This document shows, one piece after another, positions 7,869-60,154 of a stretch of 64,000 nucleotides of DNA. The notes beneath the pieces were generated by a model. It was not told the origin of the DNA and ran no database searches. It saw nothing but the letters and a program-made list of their open reading frames with translations. The stretch is from assembly GCA_002811645.1 (NCBI GenBank), contig PDIP01000257.1:25524-89523 (forward strand). The letters are read 5' to 3'. The position numbers and the translations under genes are program-made. Origin of the DNA: Corallochytrium limacisporum Hawaii (taxonomy: Eukaryota; Protista; Pluriformea). Numbering within the stretch: the stretch's first letter is position 1; every line of letters starts with the position of its first letter.

Positions 7869-9314
7869 CTCTCAGTCTTTGCACAATTCTTTGAGATATG
7901 AAATATTCCGCGTTCTCATGTGTATCATGATCCCTCTCCCTTGATCTAGTCTTTCATTCTAGCGAACCAGTCTTCAGATACTAAGCTGGATTGTCAGTTC
8001 ATTAATCATAATACATACACCCAGAGCCATCAAATACCGTAACAAATCCATTGCCTGTCCATGCGAACAAATACATACATCAGATTACGGAGCCGTTCGG
8101 ACGCTGCGCGTCGCCGCGACGGACCGTGTGGGTGAGGGACGGGTCTCAGATGCCCAAAAGGCCAGTTCCCGCCAACCCCGCCCCTACGCAAAACGGTCTC
8201 CCGCGCTTTACCCTCCTCGCCCCTTCGAAACAGCCATTCAACGAATGCGGGTCCGCCTTGCTCGTCTCTCTGGTGCTGCTCGGTACATTCACGATAGGTG
8301 TAGCTCCATCCGTGTTCCGGTACATTCACTATGATTATCGCAGTGTGCGCTCCACTTTTCACACATGTCCCAAAGGAAACAGCACTCGCTTATTGACCTC
8401 AGTTGAACTGGGGGCCTATTTATCCACCTCACTCCTGGTAGACACCGCGAAAAAGTGTTCCCGAAGAGGAAACCGTCGCACAGTGGATCCCTGCCCTCCC
8501 CCTTTTGCCCCCCCCCCCACCGAGGGAACGGGGTGGCGGTGACGCAATGTCCCCATACATTGGGCCCCAGGATGAGATTTTGTAGCAAGCAGGCCGAGCG
8601 AGAGCGAGGAAGCGTCTTAAGCTGGGTAGGAAGGGAAGGCGGGGTTTAACAGACACGGGGTGCCTCAGCTGCAAACAGCCAGTGCGAGGGAACTGAACAA
8701 CTAAGAATAGACCCCCGAGGCGGTTTCAAACAACAAGAAAAGCCAGTCGAGCAGGCCGATGAATGATCGAGGTGTTGATGGTGATTGTGCACACTCGTGC
8801 CACCGGCGCGACGACATGTCACCGGTGGGTAAAGCCTGCTATGGGGAGTCACCGGGAGTCAGTACCAAGACTTTGGTCTGCTCTTGTTAAACTTCTTCCC
8901 TGGTTGTTTGTGAAAGTGTTGGGACGAGGAGGGTGCATTGCAGCCAATCAGAGTTTGTGAACAGTCCCACTCAGCGACACAAACCAGAGACAGACGTAAG
9001 GAATCGACATGGAGAGATGTCATCACGAACACTCTATATTCCAGTGAAGTTTGTCGAGGTCTGCTGGATGCATTATCTCTTTCCAGGCGGGGAGATTGGG
9101 TAGGGGAGTCCTATAGTGTTTAACGAAAACCAAACCCCTAAACCCCCATGTGAAGGCACGTGAAATGAGGCTTGAGCGTTTTCAAGTGCAACATTTGGTC
9201 CAATTCCGGTGCACACTTGCTGGTACATAAGCATTGACGTGGCATTTCATTTTCCCTATGATGCGCCCAAGGTTAGGTTCCATATCCTATGGCTACAGTA
9301 AGACAGTAATCACC

Positions 9315-9851
9315 ATGGCTGACATCGAATACATCAAATCTCTCGTGGCTGCCATCCCCGACTTCCCCAAACCGGGTATTCTGTTCCGGGACATATTTCC
9401 TGTGTTCCACGACCCCGTAGCGGTGCAGAGCATTATCAATCACCTGGCTGCCCACATCCAGAAGACACACAAGGACGTGCACGCCATCGTTGGTCTCGAT
9501 GCCCGTGGTTTCCTGATCGGTCCCCCACTGGCCATGGCCCTTGGGGCCAAGTTCGTGCCTGTGCGTAAGAAAGGCAAGCTTCCGGGTGAATGTGTGGACG
9601 TTGAGTACAAGCTGGAATATGGCAGTGACCATTTCGAGATGCAGAAGCGCAGCCTGAAGGAGGGCGAGAACGTCATCATTGTCGACGATCTGCTGGCCAC
9701 TGGTGGCACCCTGAGCGCTGCCAACGAATTGTGCAAGCTGTTGGGAGCCACCGTCCTGCAAAACCTTGTCTTGATCGAACTCACTCCCCTCAAGGGCCGC
9801 AACAAGGTCAGTACCCCCGTCTACGCCATGATCCAGTACGACGACGAGTAA
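9315..9851 (+). CDS. APRT: Adenine phosphoribosyltransferase
   Basis: IPDFPKPGILFRDI, GLDARGF, VRKKGKLPG, Y.LEYG and PRPP motif IIVDDLLATGGT. Start taken at accATGG (9315). Confidence 0.98.
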   Translation: MADIEYIKSLVAAIPDFPKPGILFRDIFPVFHDPVAVQSIINHLAAHIQKTHKDVHAIVGLDARGFLIGPPLAMALGAKFVPVRKKGKLPGECVDVEYKLEYGSDHFEMQKRSLKEGENVIIVDDLLATGGTLSAANELCKLLGATVLQNLVLIELTPLKGRNKVSTPVYAMIQYDDE

Positions 9852-9964
9852 GTTTGTCAACAGACTACGCGTTACGAAATTGTGTACAATATAATGAACT
9901 ACTGTTCCCCATTGGCACCGAAAGTGTAAAGATCTATTTAAAGTTTATGGTGAAAAGGACCCTC

Positions 9965-10380
9965 TTAGTTCCCTCCGCGAAGAGCAAGCACTAAATGCAG
10001 AACCGTTCCTCCCGAAATCTTGTAGTCCTCTGCTGTCTTTTCGTCGTTCCTGCATGAGCAAACATTTAAAAATAGATGACATACGTTAGCAAACATGTCC
10101 AGCAAAAAGGTGGTCGCAGGGACCTCTGCACGGATACTTACATTGCACGGCCACTGAAAATAAGACGTTGTTGGGCAGGAGGAATGCCTTCCTTCTCTTC
10201 AACACGTTCCTTGATGCGCTCAATCTTGTCAGTGGGCTCGATATCGATCTCGATCTGTCATCACACGAAAACAATTAAAATACATCCCGCTTGTTAGTAA
10301 ACTCCATTCCCATGCACCCAATTCGTTAGCATTCCTCTACCTACTTCCTTGCCCGTTAGGGTCTTCACCTTGATCAACAT
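9965..10380 (-). CDS. NEDD8: NEDD8/Rub1 ubiquitin-like protein, 3 exons (10380-10345, 10254-10142, 10049-9965), 77 aa
   Basis: Manual splicing gives [12 protein letters not shown]|[38 protein letters not shown]|[27 protein letters not shown]. Ala72 distinguishes NEDD8 from ubiquitin. Confidence 0.97.
10050..10141 (-). other. Spliceosomal intron 2 of NEDD8 (92 nt, phase 2, within Met50 codon)
   Basis: GTAAGT donor, TGCTAAC branch site (10091-10085) and CAG acceptor; removal restores the frame to LRGG. Confidence 0.95.
10255..10344 (-). other. Spliceosomal intron 1 of NEDD8 (90 nt, phase 0)
   Basis: GTAGGT donor, TACTAAC branch site (10299-10293) and CAG acceptor; removal restores the NEDD8 frame. 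Confidence 0.95.
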
Positions 10381-57522: not shown

Positions 57523-59901
57523 TCAGTAACCGCCAGCCTGCGGTGGTTGGCCTTGCTGGCCAGCAGGGTCCGGGCCCGGTTCATCACCGCCTTGCTGTGG
57601 CTGGCTGCCATAGCCAGCAGGCATTTGCTGCGGACGCATACCACCCCCCTGTGGGGGCGGTGGTCCTCCAGGGTAAGCCTGGGGATCTACACCGTATGAG
57701 CCACCCGGCATGGGTTTAGGCGGCATGTTACCTCCAGGGTAGTGATGGGGAGATCCCCCACCGTATGGCTGCGGTGGCATCGGCTGCTGCGGGGAATAGC
57801 CAGGCATCTCACCGGGTCGACGATTGTAGCCATGCGGTTGAGGCGGCCCTCTCCACTGACCATTGTCTGGGTACGGCCGGCCTGGTTGGGGTTGCTGCTG
57901 TGATTGGTGCTGTGGCTGGCCCATCTGCTGCTGTGGCTGGGATCCCGGCGTCCCGCGGAATTGTTGCGGCTGCTGTTGCTGCTGCCAGGATCCTTGTGGT
58001 CCGCCAGGCGGCGGAGGCGCTGCTCCTGGATGAGGAGCATATCCTGTGCTGCCCGGGCGACGATCTCCAGCGGCTCCAGCAACCATATGTGGTGAGGCGG
58101 TACCAGGAGGTGGTCCACCAGCCCGGTGGCCATCATGTTCCCCTGACTGTTCGTCTTGTGCTGGTGGGGGTGCTCCGTAAGACTGCATCGGCTGCTGTCC
58201 TTGCTGTGGTGGATAGGGACCCTGACCAGGAGCTGGTCCCCGGGGACCTGGAGCTTCCTCTCTGCCCTGCATTGTCGGCGGCGGCGGTAAGGGTGGTCTC
58301 CCAGGTCCCCCCTGTGGGTGCTGCTGCATGGGCGCTCCAGGAGGCCCACGGTGTTGCATTTGCGGGGCCATGTAGCCACCATGAGGACCAGGTTGATGCA
58401 TCTGTTGCTGAGGAGGTGGGGGCAGTGGATGTTGGCCACCATACGCATGTGCATATCCAGGGTGTTGAACAGCCCCGGGAGGTGGAGGGGCCGACATGCC
58501 CTCAACTGGGCGAGGCTGACCCATCATTTGATAAGATCCATCGGGTTGCATGGGTGGGGGAGGAGGACCCCCGGGGTGATGCGGTCCCATATCATGTGGC
58601 TGTTGAACATGTGGCATACCTGGAGGCATGGCGTAGGGCGCGTTTGGCCTGACTCCCATAGGGGGCATCGGGAGACCAGGCTGCTGGGCACCATGGAATC
58701 CTGGTGGCGGTGCATACTGGGGGTCCATTCCAGCTTGCACAGCTTCGTCTGGATGGCCAGGCCAGCGTTGTTGCATGGGAGCATTGGGAACCACGCGCCG
58801 GTGGCCGCTCCATCGTGCAGCTTCTTTCCGTGACCTTGGGCCCGGCTTCGCTGCCTTGGCTCGGGCACGGGGTCCTTTCGCTCCTCTGCGGCCGCTATTG
58901 TCATCACTGAGCAACTGCCTTGCATAGTCGTCGGTGATTGCCCAAAATGTTCCCTTTCCGGGCTCACTTTCCTGTCTTGGGATCTTGATAAATCCATGGT
59001 TCAGACTCAGGTTGTGTCTGACACTGTTCTGCCAATTGTTGTCTGCATGGCGGAAGAATGGGTAAGTGGTCATGATGTGTGTGTAGATGGAACTTAGGGT
59101 TGCTTTGCGGTCTGTAGAGGCAAGGATAGCCTTCGCAATCAATTTTGCATAGCTGAAAGGAGGTTTCACATTGGGGTCCGTGAAATACTCTGGGACTTCC
59201 TGCTTCGATCCTTTCTCCTGATCTTCTCCAGTTGCTTGCGTTTTTGTCGGATCATTTCCATCTTTCCCTGGGCCCATTGCAGTTACCGGGCTCGTTCGCT
59301 TCTCAGCCTTTGTCACAGCCGGAGGCGCCGGGTGAGTAGGAATGGGTTGTGAAGTTTCCGACCCCGAACCCGGTCTAACTTGTGTTCCGCCGCCAACACC
59401 TTGTGCTGGATGACCTGGTATATTTGGCCGCTCTGGTGGCACATCTCTGAAAACGGGACCCTGTGGCAACATAAAATGCAACCGAAGGTTACCAAACTCA
59501 ACCACAGTTGCATTGCGCAAAGCAACTGGTGCATGACTTCGTGAGATGACATTGCCATTCACCTTGATACTGCGCTCGCCGTGAACTGTAAGCTCAAAGG
59601 TGTTTTGTCGGAAAATATAGTCAATGTGTACCTCAAAATTCTCGGTCGCGGGGATCACCCAAGTTTCAGCAAGCCCCGCTGGTGGTTCCTGAGGTTTTCC
59701 GACGATAAGCGATAGTTTACGAACGTAAAATATGATACCATCATCGCCCACAAGTTTGGCATACGCTGGTTTATCAGCTTTCACAAGCTTCCCTTCCTTA
59801 ACCAGCTGTTCAGCATGTTGTGGGTCTATCTCCTGTGGCAAGGTGCCCACCTGTTCATAGTAACTCATCGGAGGCCCCGAGCCTTCCGGCAATGAATTCA
59901 T
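57523..59901 (-). CDS. FOXK: FHA + forkhead transcription factor (FoxK/Fkh type) with long P/Q/G low-complexity tail
   Basis: AYAKLVG...FYVRK (degenerate FHA) and forkhead [14 protein letters not shown]...[18 protein letters not shown]...PGKGTFW. Confidence 0.9.
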
Positions 59902-59914
59902 GGTGATTGTTTAC

Positions 59915-60154
59915 CTACATACGCAGGTGACTTCTTTGAACTATGTGGTTTCACTATTCCACATCTCTTAAGACATATACTTCGCAATTGTATACTGATA
60001 TGGTAGTGTGTATGACAAATTGGGTCTACCTACACTGCAACCAACGCTAGATCCATAAGGTTAGTTACATGAATACTTCGAAGTACCATGTTGATCTAAA
60101 AACAATACAGAGTCCTAAGAAGAACCAATTTAATGAAAGCTCACATCGCTACAT
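59915..60154 (-). promoter_or_regulatory. Cluster of four ATG-stop elements plus short uORFs in the putative FoxK 5' leader
   Basis: ATGTAG 60154-60149, ATGTGA 60146-60141, ATGTAA 60070-60065 and ATGTAG 59920-59915. Confidence 0.55.

Follow-up and report, generated by a model that had tools for sequence, protein, structure and literature searches.

Does an intron-poor holozoan use the smallest possible upstream open reading frame (uORF), an AUG followed at once by a stop codon, as a routine control on translation? The question was raised by a 64,000-nucleotide stretch of Corallochytrium limacisporum Hawaii DNA (contig PDIP01000257.1, positions 25,524 to 89,523; hereafter the window), in which an earlier note counted 15 ATG-stop hexamers on the sense strand, and two on the antisense strand, in the 300 nt upstream of genes. 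Such "start-stops" were taken to lie in long transcribed leaders of about half of all genes and to form a genome-wide layer of control. A minimal uORF of this kind is known from the leader of Arabidopsis NIP5;1, where the AUG-stop mediates boron-dependent ribosome stalling; that is one conserved ligand-responsive element, whereas the elements described here point to no common context, ligand or gene class. The same hexamer occurs in transcribed leaders before the main AUG of 1417 of 19,514 human genes (7%), ATF4 included, and its ribosome occupancy, repression and conservation have been measured there (10.1101/2021.07.26.453809; PMC13338717). Our evidence, in contrast, comes from sequence and RNA contigs, and about 20% of genes carry a start-stop within 100 nt where chance gives 13%. 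We found no paper on the UTRs of C. limacisporum. If start-stops were widely selected, ribosomes of this organism would commonly reach the main AUG by reinitiation; selection in a large share of genes would also offer a transfectable system for elongation-free initiation, recycling and reinitiation, and would push the mechanism back before animals by way of a unicellular relative. The evidence does not support selection on that scale.

A re-scan of the window bore out every position of the 15 sense hexamers and of the two antisense ones (41625 and 46785), the minus-strand coordinates of the earlier note being those of the A of ATG. In all 15, an AUG is followed immediately by UAA, UAG or UGA upstream of the main AUG. 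The hexamers, and three leaders covered by RNA contigs from two strains (X1 and X2), are as follows.

9148..9153, plus strand, ATG-TGA, APRT; -110 from the first in-frame ATG and -167 from the likely true start at 9315, so that it may lie outside the leader
20180..20185, plus strand, ATG-TGA, TRIP4; -34 of ATG 20214, with A at -3
26665..26670, plus strand, ATG-TAA, 669-aa ORF ("O-FucT"); -18 of ATG 26683
33185..33190, plus strand, ATG-TGA, PRA1; -41 from the first ATG and -149 from the likely start at 33334; tail of an ATG-ATG-TGA at 33182-33190
38546..38551, plus strand, ATG-TAA, 628-aa orphan ORF; -150 of ATG 38696
41597..41693, plus strand, ATG9 leader; RNA contigs from 41605 (X1) and 41597 (X2), jointless
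41678..41683, plus strand, ATG-TAG, ATG9; -16 of ATG 41694, within RNA contigs
46270..46394, minus strand, POLH leader; RNA contig ends at 46387 (X1) and 46394 (X2)
46300..46305, minus strand, ATG-TAG, POLH; -36 of ATG 46269, within RNA contigs
46356..46361, minus strand, ATG-TAG, POLH; -92, within RNA contigs
46368..46373, minus strand, ATG-TGA, POLH; -104, 14-21 nt inside the contig end
46902..47061, plus strand, PHKA (phosphorylase kinase alpha/beta) leader; RNA contigs from 46902 (X1) and 46955 (X2), jointless
46984..46989, plus strand, ATG-TAA, PHKA; -78 of ATG 47062, within RNA contigs
54697..54702, plus strand, ATG-TAG, SAM-domain gene; -206 of ATG 54903
59915..59920, minus strand, ATG-TAG, forkhead gene; -19 of ATG 59901
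60065..60070, minus strand, ATG-TAA, forkhead gene; -169
60141..60146, minus strand, ATG-TGA, forkhead gene; -245
60149..60154, minus strand, ATG-TAG, forkhead gene; -253

Pfam supports the names APRT, TRIP4, PRA1, ATG9, POLH, phosphorylase kinase alpha/beta and forkhead. Three labels were not confirmed: the "O-FucT" ORF has no Pfam match, a SAM domain is the sole Pfam support for "Smaug", and Pfam does not show the K subtype of Fox for the forkhead gene.

With an independent gene call (ORF plus codon score; 19 intronless genes in the window), the count of 15 versus 2 in 10 genes was reproduced (sign test, p=0.002), and di- and trinucleotide shuffles gave a sense expectation of 5.2-6.3. In five cases the element does finish 30 nt or less before the main ATG (gaps of 10, 12, 13, 28 and 30 nt), and for 7 of the 15 the distance to the start exceeds 100 nt. 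Frame bias is absent (14/16/14 across the three frames), so the counts do not stem from first-ATG ascertainment; shifting 11 doubtful start codons had little effect (15:2 in the window, 29:17 among the held-out genes described below). An equal skew arose in the window for 0.15% of random triplet-plus-three-codon sets, and a stop directly followed 15 of 91 ATGs as against 11 of 301 control triplets. All eight ATG-NNN-stop uORFs cited as examples are present (seven by script, NEDD8 in the sequence), with a strand bias of 8 sense versus 4 antisense that is not significant.

Upstream of ATG9, POLH and PHKA the RNA contigs cover 89-160 nt and run without joints across all five elements tested (one in ATG9, three in POLH, one in PHKA), which places these five in mRNA leaders, although the contigs give neither strand nor the share of molecules carrying each leader. 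The long transcribed leaders that had been proposed are thus transcribed, unspliced over the tested stretch and furnished with start-stops; their length of about 300 nt did not hold, since the main contigs stop between -89 and -160. In X2 a POLH contig of depth 3 extends to 46576, and an ATG-TAC-TAG at -210 of PHKA lies outside the contigs of both X1 and X2. A uORF of nine codons also falls within the ATG9 leader, as does the antisense hexamer at 41625. Leaders look roughly 100-160 nt long and are A/G-rich on the sense strand in these three genes, and we infer the same for the others. All five tested elements are identical in the second strain, which differs at just 17 of 4798 sites.

It is most improbable that the hexamers belong to 5' splice donors or to introns that are spliced out of the leaders. 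One coding-region hexamer does have such an origin, the minus-strand ATG-TAA at 10138-10143 in NEDD8 being a Met codon interrupted by a GTAAGT donor; acceptor-like sequence occurs in some upstream regions, and three of six contig ends coincide with the G of AG-G. For the tested leaders, however, this origin fails. Loss of leaders by splicing had been named beforehand as a result that would speak against the proposal, and neither joints nor loose ends were found in three leaders in two runs. The contig end is upstream of the element in each of the five cases tested, GTAAG and GTGAG have no consistent sense bias, and elements at -16 to -36 are so close to the start that no space is left for an intron.

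Beyond the window, the imbalance was much reduced. In the 300 nt upstream of 74 held-out genes, ATG-stop occurred 29 times on the sense and 18 times on the antisense strand (p=0.14), half the window rate (Fisher p=0.04), and only 0.35% of 19-gene draws from this set reached at least 15 hexamers. The window is an outlier, and its 15:2 split is probably a high fluctuation selected after the fact. Nor do about half of all genes carry a start-stop: the held-out figures are 35% (300 nt) and 20% (100 nt), with chance giving ~23% and ~13%. No excess was present at -300 to -101 (12 versus 14). At -100 to -1 there were 17 sense and 4 antisense hexamers, the 17 comparing with 10.3 expected (1.7-fold, p=0.02), in a 100-nt zone that, like the split by A at -3 used below, was picked after viewing the data; of the 64 triplets in this zone, ATG is the one most prone to have a stop directly after it. 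The expectation rises to ~11.5 once purging of overlapping upstream ATGs (uATGs) is included (p=0.08), and to 12.8 in an order-3 Markov model that is partly circular (p=0.15).

The antisense strand itself makes a biased null, since the 100 nt preceding starts, purine-rich on the sense strand, are strongly strand-asymmetric (AACA 83:17, GTGA 57:22). Control hexamers in the held-out genes are skewed alike (GTG-stop 13:3, TTG-stop 16:7, AAG-stop 12:3); in these genes a stop directly followed 29 of 350 ATGs and 75 of 1230 control triplets, a difference that is not significant (p=0.14). C. limacisporum has been reported to carry adenine methylation (6mA) at ApT (10.1101/2024.10.28.620566); as this mark is symmetric, it was rejected as a source of strand bias.

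Genome-wide, strand-specific enrichment was not recovered. Pattern counts anchored on strong-context AUGs, limited to TAA/TAG at -21 to -83, gave 62 sense and 70 antisense hexamers; this test is ~70% diluted by non-start anchors (estimated from 20 anchor matches), and its anchors favour uATG-poor genes (0.67 versus 1.69 per gene). Under rough dilution models, an excess of at least 1.5-fold is rejected (p<0.005). TTG-TAR numbered 34 and ATG-TAR 28, counts not normalised for TTG being the commoner triplet. Two outcomes that the earlier note had held to be damaging, loss of the bias genome-wide and equal skew of control hexamers, have thus largely come about.

The robust signal is a known one: uATGs that overlap the coding sequence are purged, and those terminated by a stop are left in place. 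In the pooled set of 93 genes, overlapping uATGs were halved (28 versus 54.5 expected; 22 versus 40.4 held-out), and classes of other lengths were close to expectation. At least one uATG lies within 100 nt in 73 of the 93 genes, and uATG count drops with codon score (rho=-0.33, p=0.001). Across eukaryotes, upstream AUGs are under purifying selection and overlapping uORFs are depleted (PMC7889888). The pattern here is alike in that uAUG number declines with expression level and strong main-AUG context; it differs in that depletion within 100 nt is weaker overall than that paper implies for proximal leaders (149 versus 159 expected), although some of this interval may lie outside the transcript.

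We therefore regard the hexamers as probably, for the most part, minimal uORFs that are tolerated and occur as often as chance predicts or a little more, and the window split as a fluctuation. The A/G-richness of leaders would by itself favour ATG-stop on the sense strand over the antisense. On meeting an upstream AUG, a scanning ribosome would leak past it or initiate; initiation would be costly where the upstream frame enters the coding sequence, and cheap where a stop comes at once, because the 40S subunit can recycle or reinitiate. Selection would accordingly clear overlapping uATGs, most of all in genes with optimal codons, and would spare start-stops and short uORFs.

Rather unlikely, in our estimate, is modest positive selection (~1.5-2 fold) that retains start-stops capable of initiation within the final 100 nt of the leaders of weakly expressed genes; such elements would dampen translation by holding the ribosome and forcing reinitiation. 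Pooled -100 to -1 counts are 25 versus 12.8 expected, with the excess restricted to the class with A at -3 (18 versus 3.9). In our own sample that base was found in 18 of 25 ATG-stops as against 38 of 124, and in 13 of the 17 held-out hexamers at -100 to -1 (Fisher p=0.00015). One- and two-codon uORFs are also raised (27 versus 15.7-19.5), start-stops are scarcer in the top codon-score third (0.10 versus 0.32-0.39 per gene), and the genome encodes eIF2D. Against this stand the post hoc choice of the 100-nt zone and of the split, the genome-wide 62:70, and the failure of -3A as a decisive signal in a prospective genome-wide test (-3A 84 versus -6A control 75), which rejects a 4.5-fold effect (p=1e-6) and is compatible with a 2-fold one (p=0.15). 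The genome-wide -3A share was 25 of 62 on the sense and 14 of 70 on the antisense strand (p=0.013, uncorrected for strand composition, antisense -3 bases being tallied by hand). It is quite unlikely that most mRNAs have leaders of 100-160 nt with at least one uAUG and that good-context start-stops are selected in about one fifth of genes to lower output.

A non-translational origin of the residual skew, from promoter sequence or from a DNA or RNA motif shorter than the hexamer (TG-TAA/TAG, UGUA-like), with the main transcription starts downstream of many elements, we judge very unlikely. It draws on the held-out last 100 nt, where TGTA (56:31) and TTG- and GTG-stop are skewed, on TTG-stop at 19 versus 10.3 expected, and on an order-4 Markov model that takes up most of the excess; moreover, the contigs cannot place the start of most molecules, and ATG depletion is sharpest in the last 30-50 nt. 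However, CTG-, GTG- and TTG-stop are unenriched in the window (11:19), five elements lie within main RNA contigs, and the halving of overlapping uATGs over -100 to -1 indicates a zone scanned by ribosomes.

As tolerated minimal uORFs, the start-stops do not look like a selected genome-wide layer. What remains of use is a set of ~100-160 nt leaders that tolerate uAUGs unless these run into coding sequence. Judging by the start-stops of humans and plants, individual elements, such as those 16-19 nt before the main ATG and the clusters of the forkhead gene and POLH, probably lower the translation of the genes they precede.

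Gene calls used ORF length together with a codon score for which long ORFs served as the training set. This gave 19 intronless genes in the window, most of whose names are backed by Pfam; a Pfam search returned no match for the 669-aa 'O-FucT' or for the 628-aa orphan. The 17 ATG-stop hexamers (ATG directly followed by TAA, TAG or TGA; "start-stops") counted in the earlier note, 15 sense and 2 antisense, were all found in place, and the 300 nt upstream of the called genes hold 15 on the sense strand, spread over 10 genes, versus 2 on the antisense strand. Shuffles predict 5.2-6.3 sense copies, and an equal skew occurs in 0.15% of random sets made of one triplet and three codons. 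The count is correct, and it is unusual within the window.

The marked strand bias fails to extend beyond the window. In a held-out sample of 74 genes, called in 200 kb from another contig of the same genome, the upstream 300 nt contain 29 sense and 18 antisense ATG-stops (p = 0.14). A sense copy is present in 26 of the 74 genes (35%, CI 24-47%), against 19-20 copies, or about 23% of genes, expected from shuffles, rather than in the half of all genes that had been proposed. The window rate is twice the held-out rate (p = 0.04), and draws of 19 held-out genes reach 15 copies 0.35% of the time. No strand effect is seen in the held-out zone from -300 to -101 (12 sense, 14 antisense); from -100 to -1 the counts are 17 and 4, with 2 on each strand in the last 30 nt. 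Corrected for the start-calling method, the 17 compare with 10.3 expected (p = 0.02), in a zone picked post hoc.

For these counts the opposite strand makes a poor null, because over the last 100 nt the sense strand is rich in purines (sense:antisense AACA 83:17, AAAG 90:30, GTGA 57:22, GTAG 46:18) and control hexamers are skewed likewise. Held-out GTG-stop (13:3), TTG-stop (16:7) and AAG-stop (12:3) all favor the sense strand. Among the 64 triplets ATG ranks first in being followed by a stop, at a rate not significantly higher than for CTG, GTG and TTG (p = 0.17). On the 3' side of 89 genes (window plus loci L002-L021), the 100 nt that follow the stop codon hold ATG more often than any other A/T/G permutation (177 versus 109-147), and ATG-stop is skewed antisense (12 sense, 19 antisense).

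Modest real selection for start-stops is an unlikely reading, and a lead towards it in the sample was not borne out. In the pooled 93 genes, A at -3 precedes 18 of 25 start-stops at -100 to -1, versus 38 of the 124 remaining upstream ATGs (p = 0.0002); the held-out figure is 13 of 17, and 67% of main starts have this A. Such an excess would indicate selection for initiation. Prospectively, patterns were counted genome-wide before strong-context AUGs standing for main starts ("anchors"), with A at -6 as control, giving 84 matches for -3 and 75 for -6. Neutrality was roughly predicted to give 74 matches, a two-fold effect 105 and an effect as large as in the sample 182; this last is rejected (p = 1e-6), and a two-fold effect is not (p = 0.15). 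Under a stricter anchor, the A is present in 25 of 62 matches versus a background of about 30% (p = 0.1). That anchor, applied only to ATG-TAA/TAG at -22 to -83, gave 62 sense and 70 antisense matches, where sample rates would predict about 96:39; the sense share falls slightly short even of what a neutral model predicts. True starts make up about 30% of the anchors (6/20), a dilution estimate from few matches, and an excess of at least 1.5-fold was rejected under a range of dilutions (p < 0.005). Genes resembling the anchors carry fewer upstream ATGs (0.67 versus 1.69 per gene), yet in the sample their start-stops are as frequent as those of other genes (4 in 15 genes versus 20 in 78).

Two runs of assembled contigs aligned to window 41301-47300 are probably RNA, because they leave intergenic stretches empty. 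One is identical to the window, and the other shows 17 differences over 4798 sites. Their starts, one per run, are as follows.

ATG9 leader: 89 and 97 nt before the start codon
POLH leader: 118 and 125 nt before the start codon
Phosphorylase kinase gene leader: 160 and 107 nt before the start codon

Neither run has joints or loose ends in these three leaders. Since the contigs begin 5' of the elements without joints, all five elements in this stretch lie in transcribed, unspliced leader. Leaders seem to be 100-160 nt long rather than the ~300 nt first supposed, although the contigs do not tell where most molecules start; this length agrees with the zone where the ATG-stop statistics change. 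Of the other 10 elements, six sit 149-253 nt away from the probable start codon and may be promoter sequence. A telomere-box-like AAACCAAACCCCTAAACCCC at 9129-9147, directly 5' of the APRT ATG-TGA, suggests the same for that element. That the hexamers as a class reflect promoter location or a non-translational motif, a reading that the skewed controls would suit and the five leader elements would not, is improbable.

Splicing is a very remote explanation, since the three leaders covered by contigs lack joints. Genome-wide, matches to protein kinase domains are free of introns, and for Corallochytrium limacisporum (24.1 Mb, 7535 genes) 0.0 introns per coding kb are reported (PMC5560861). In this genome, reported to be nearly intronless, the NEDD8-like gene (9990-10383, minus strand) has two canonical coding introns, with donors GTAGGT and GTAAGT and CTAAC branch sites, the second splitting a Met codon AT|G. 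Of the six contig 5' ends, three coincide with the G of AG-G (41597, 41605, 46955; background 1.8% of positions, nominal p = 1e-4, post hoc), and all six start with two G/C bases. This may reflect end bias of the library, or else a short first exon, spliced or trans-spliced, that was trimmed off.

Selection is visible on another class. When upstream ATGs in -100 to -1 were classed by the frame opened, those running into the coding sequence were halved (held-out 22 versus 40.4 expected; pooled 28 versus 54.5) and have evidently been purged; frames of three or more codons in that interval were as numerous as expected. The total is near neutral (149 versus 159 expected). An ATG lies within 100 nt in 73 of 93 genes, and such ATGs become fewer as codons become more optimal (rho -0.33, p = 0.001). 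The pattern is that of eukaryotes in general (PMC7889888), with rather weak overall depletion. Modelled removal of overlapping ATGs raises the held-out start-stop expectation to about 11.5 (p = 0.08).

Start-stops are probably tolerated sites near chance frequency in scanned leaders. Scanning ribosomes would leak past upstream AUGs or initiate there, and an immediate stop would make initiation cheap, so that such sites persist near chance frequency. By sequence the elements belong to the known start-stop class, with putative function. Human start-stops repress their genes (10.1101/2021.07.26.453809; PMC13338717), and on that basis some here may repress their own gene, above all the ones placed 16-19 nt before the main ATG, because reinitiation there should be poor. 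A genome-wide start-stop layer, as envisaged in the earlier note, is unsupported. The genome encodes eIF2D. This factor occurs in most eukaryotes, and its presence says nothing about the scale of start-stop use.

ATG9 and POLH are convergent (41694-46269), with 53 nt shared between the two ORFs (44158-44210), and a single contig covers both in each run. A candidate core-promoter element, or donor of a short leader intron, is the sense-oriented GGTACT/GGTAYTT motif, which is enriched in the interval 110-220 nt before start codons (window plus L002-L021; GGTACT in 14 of 93 genes sense, 2 antisense), about 45-65 nt upstream of the contig ends at ATG9 and POLH.

41536-41542, plus strand: GGTACT/GGTAYTT
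46437-46443, minus strand: GGTACT/GGTAYTT
about 54685, plus strand: GGTACT/GGTAYTT

About 6 kb (13800-19900), flanked by a highly biased gene of 152 aa and by TRIP4, lack a codon-scoring ORF in an otherwise gene-dense window and are rich in pyrimidine and C/G runs. Four genes have a weak-context in-frame ATG 19-39 codons upstream of a strong-context ATG.

1164: TDP1-like
9258: APRT
31289: TATDN3
33226: PRA1

These are possibly leaky-scanning N-terminal extensions or untranscribed sequence; that of TATDN3 reads like a mitochondrial presequence.
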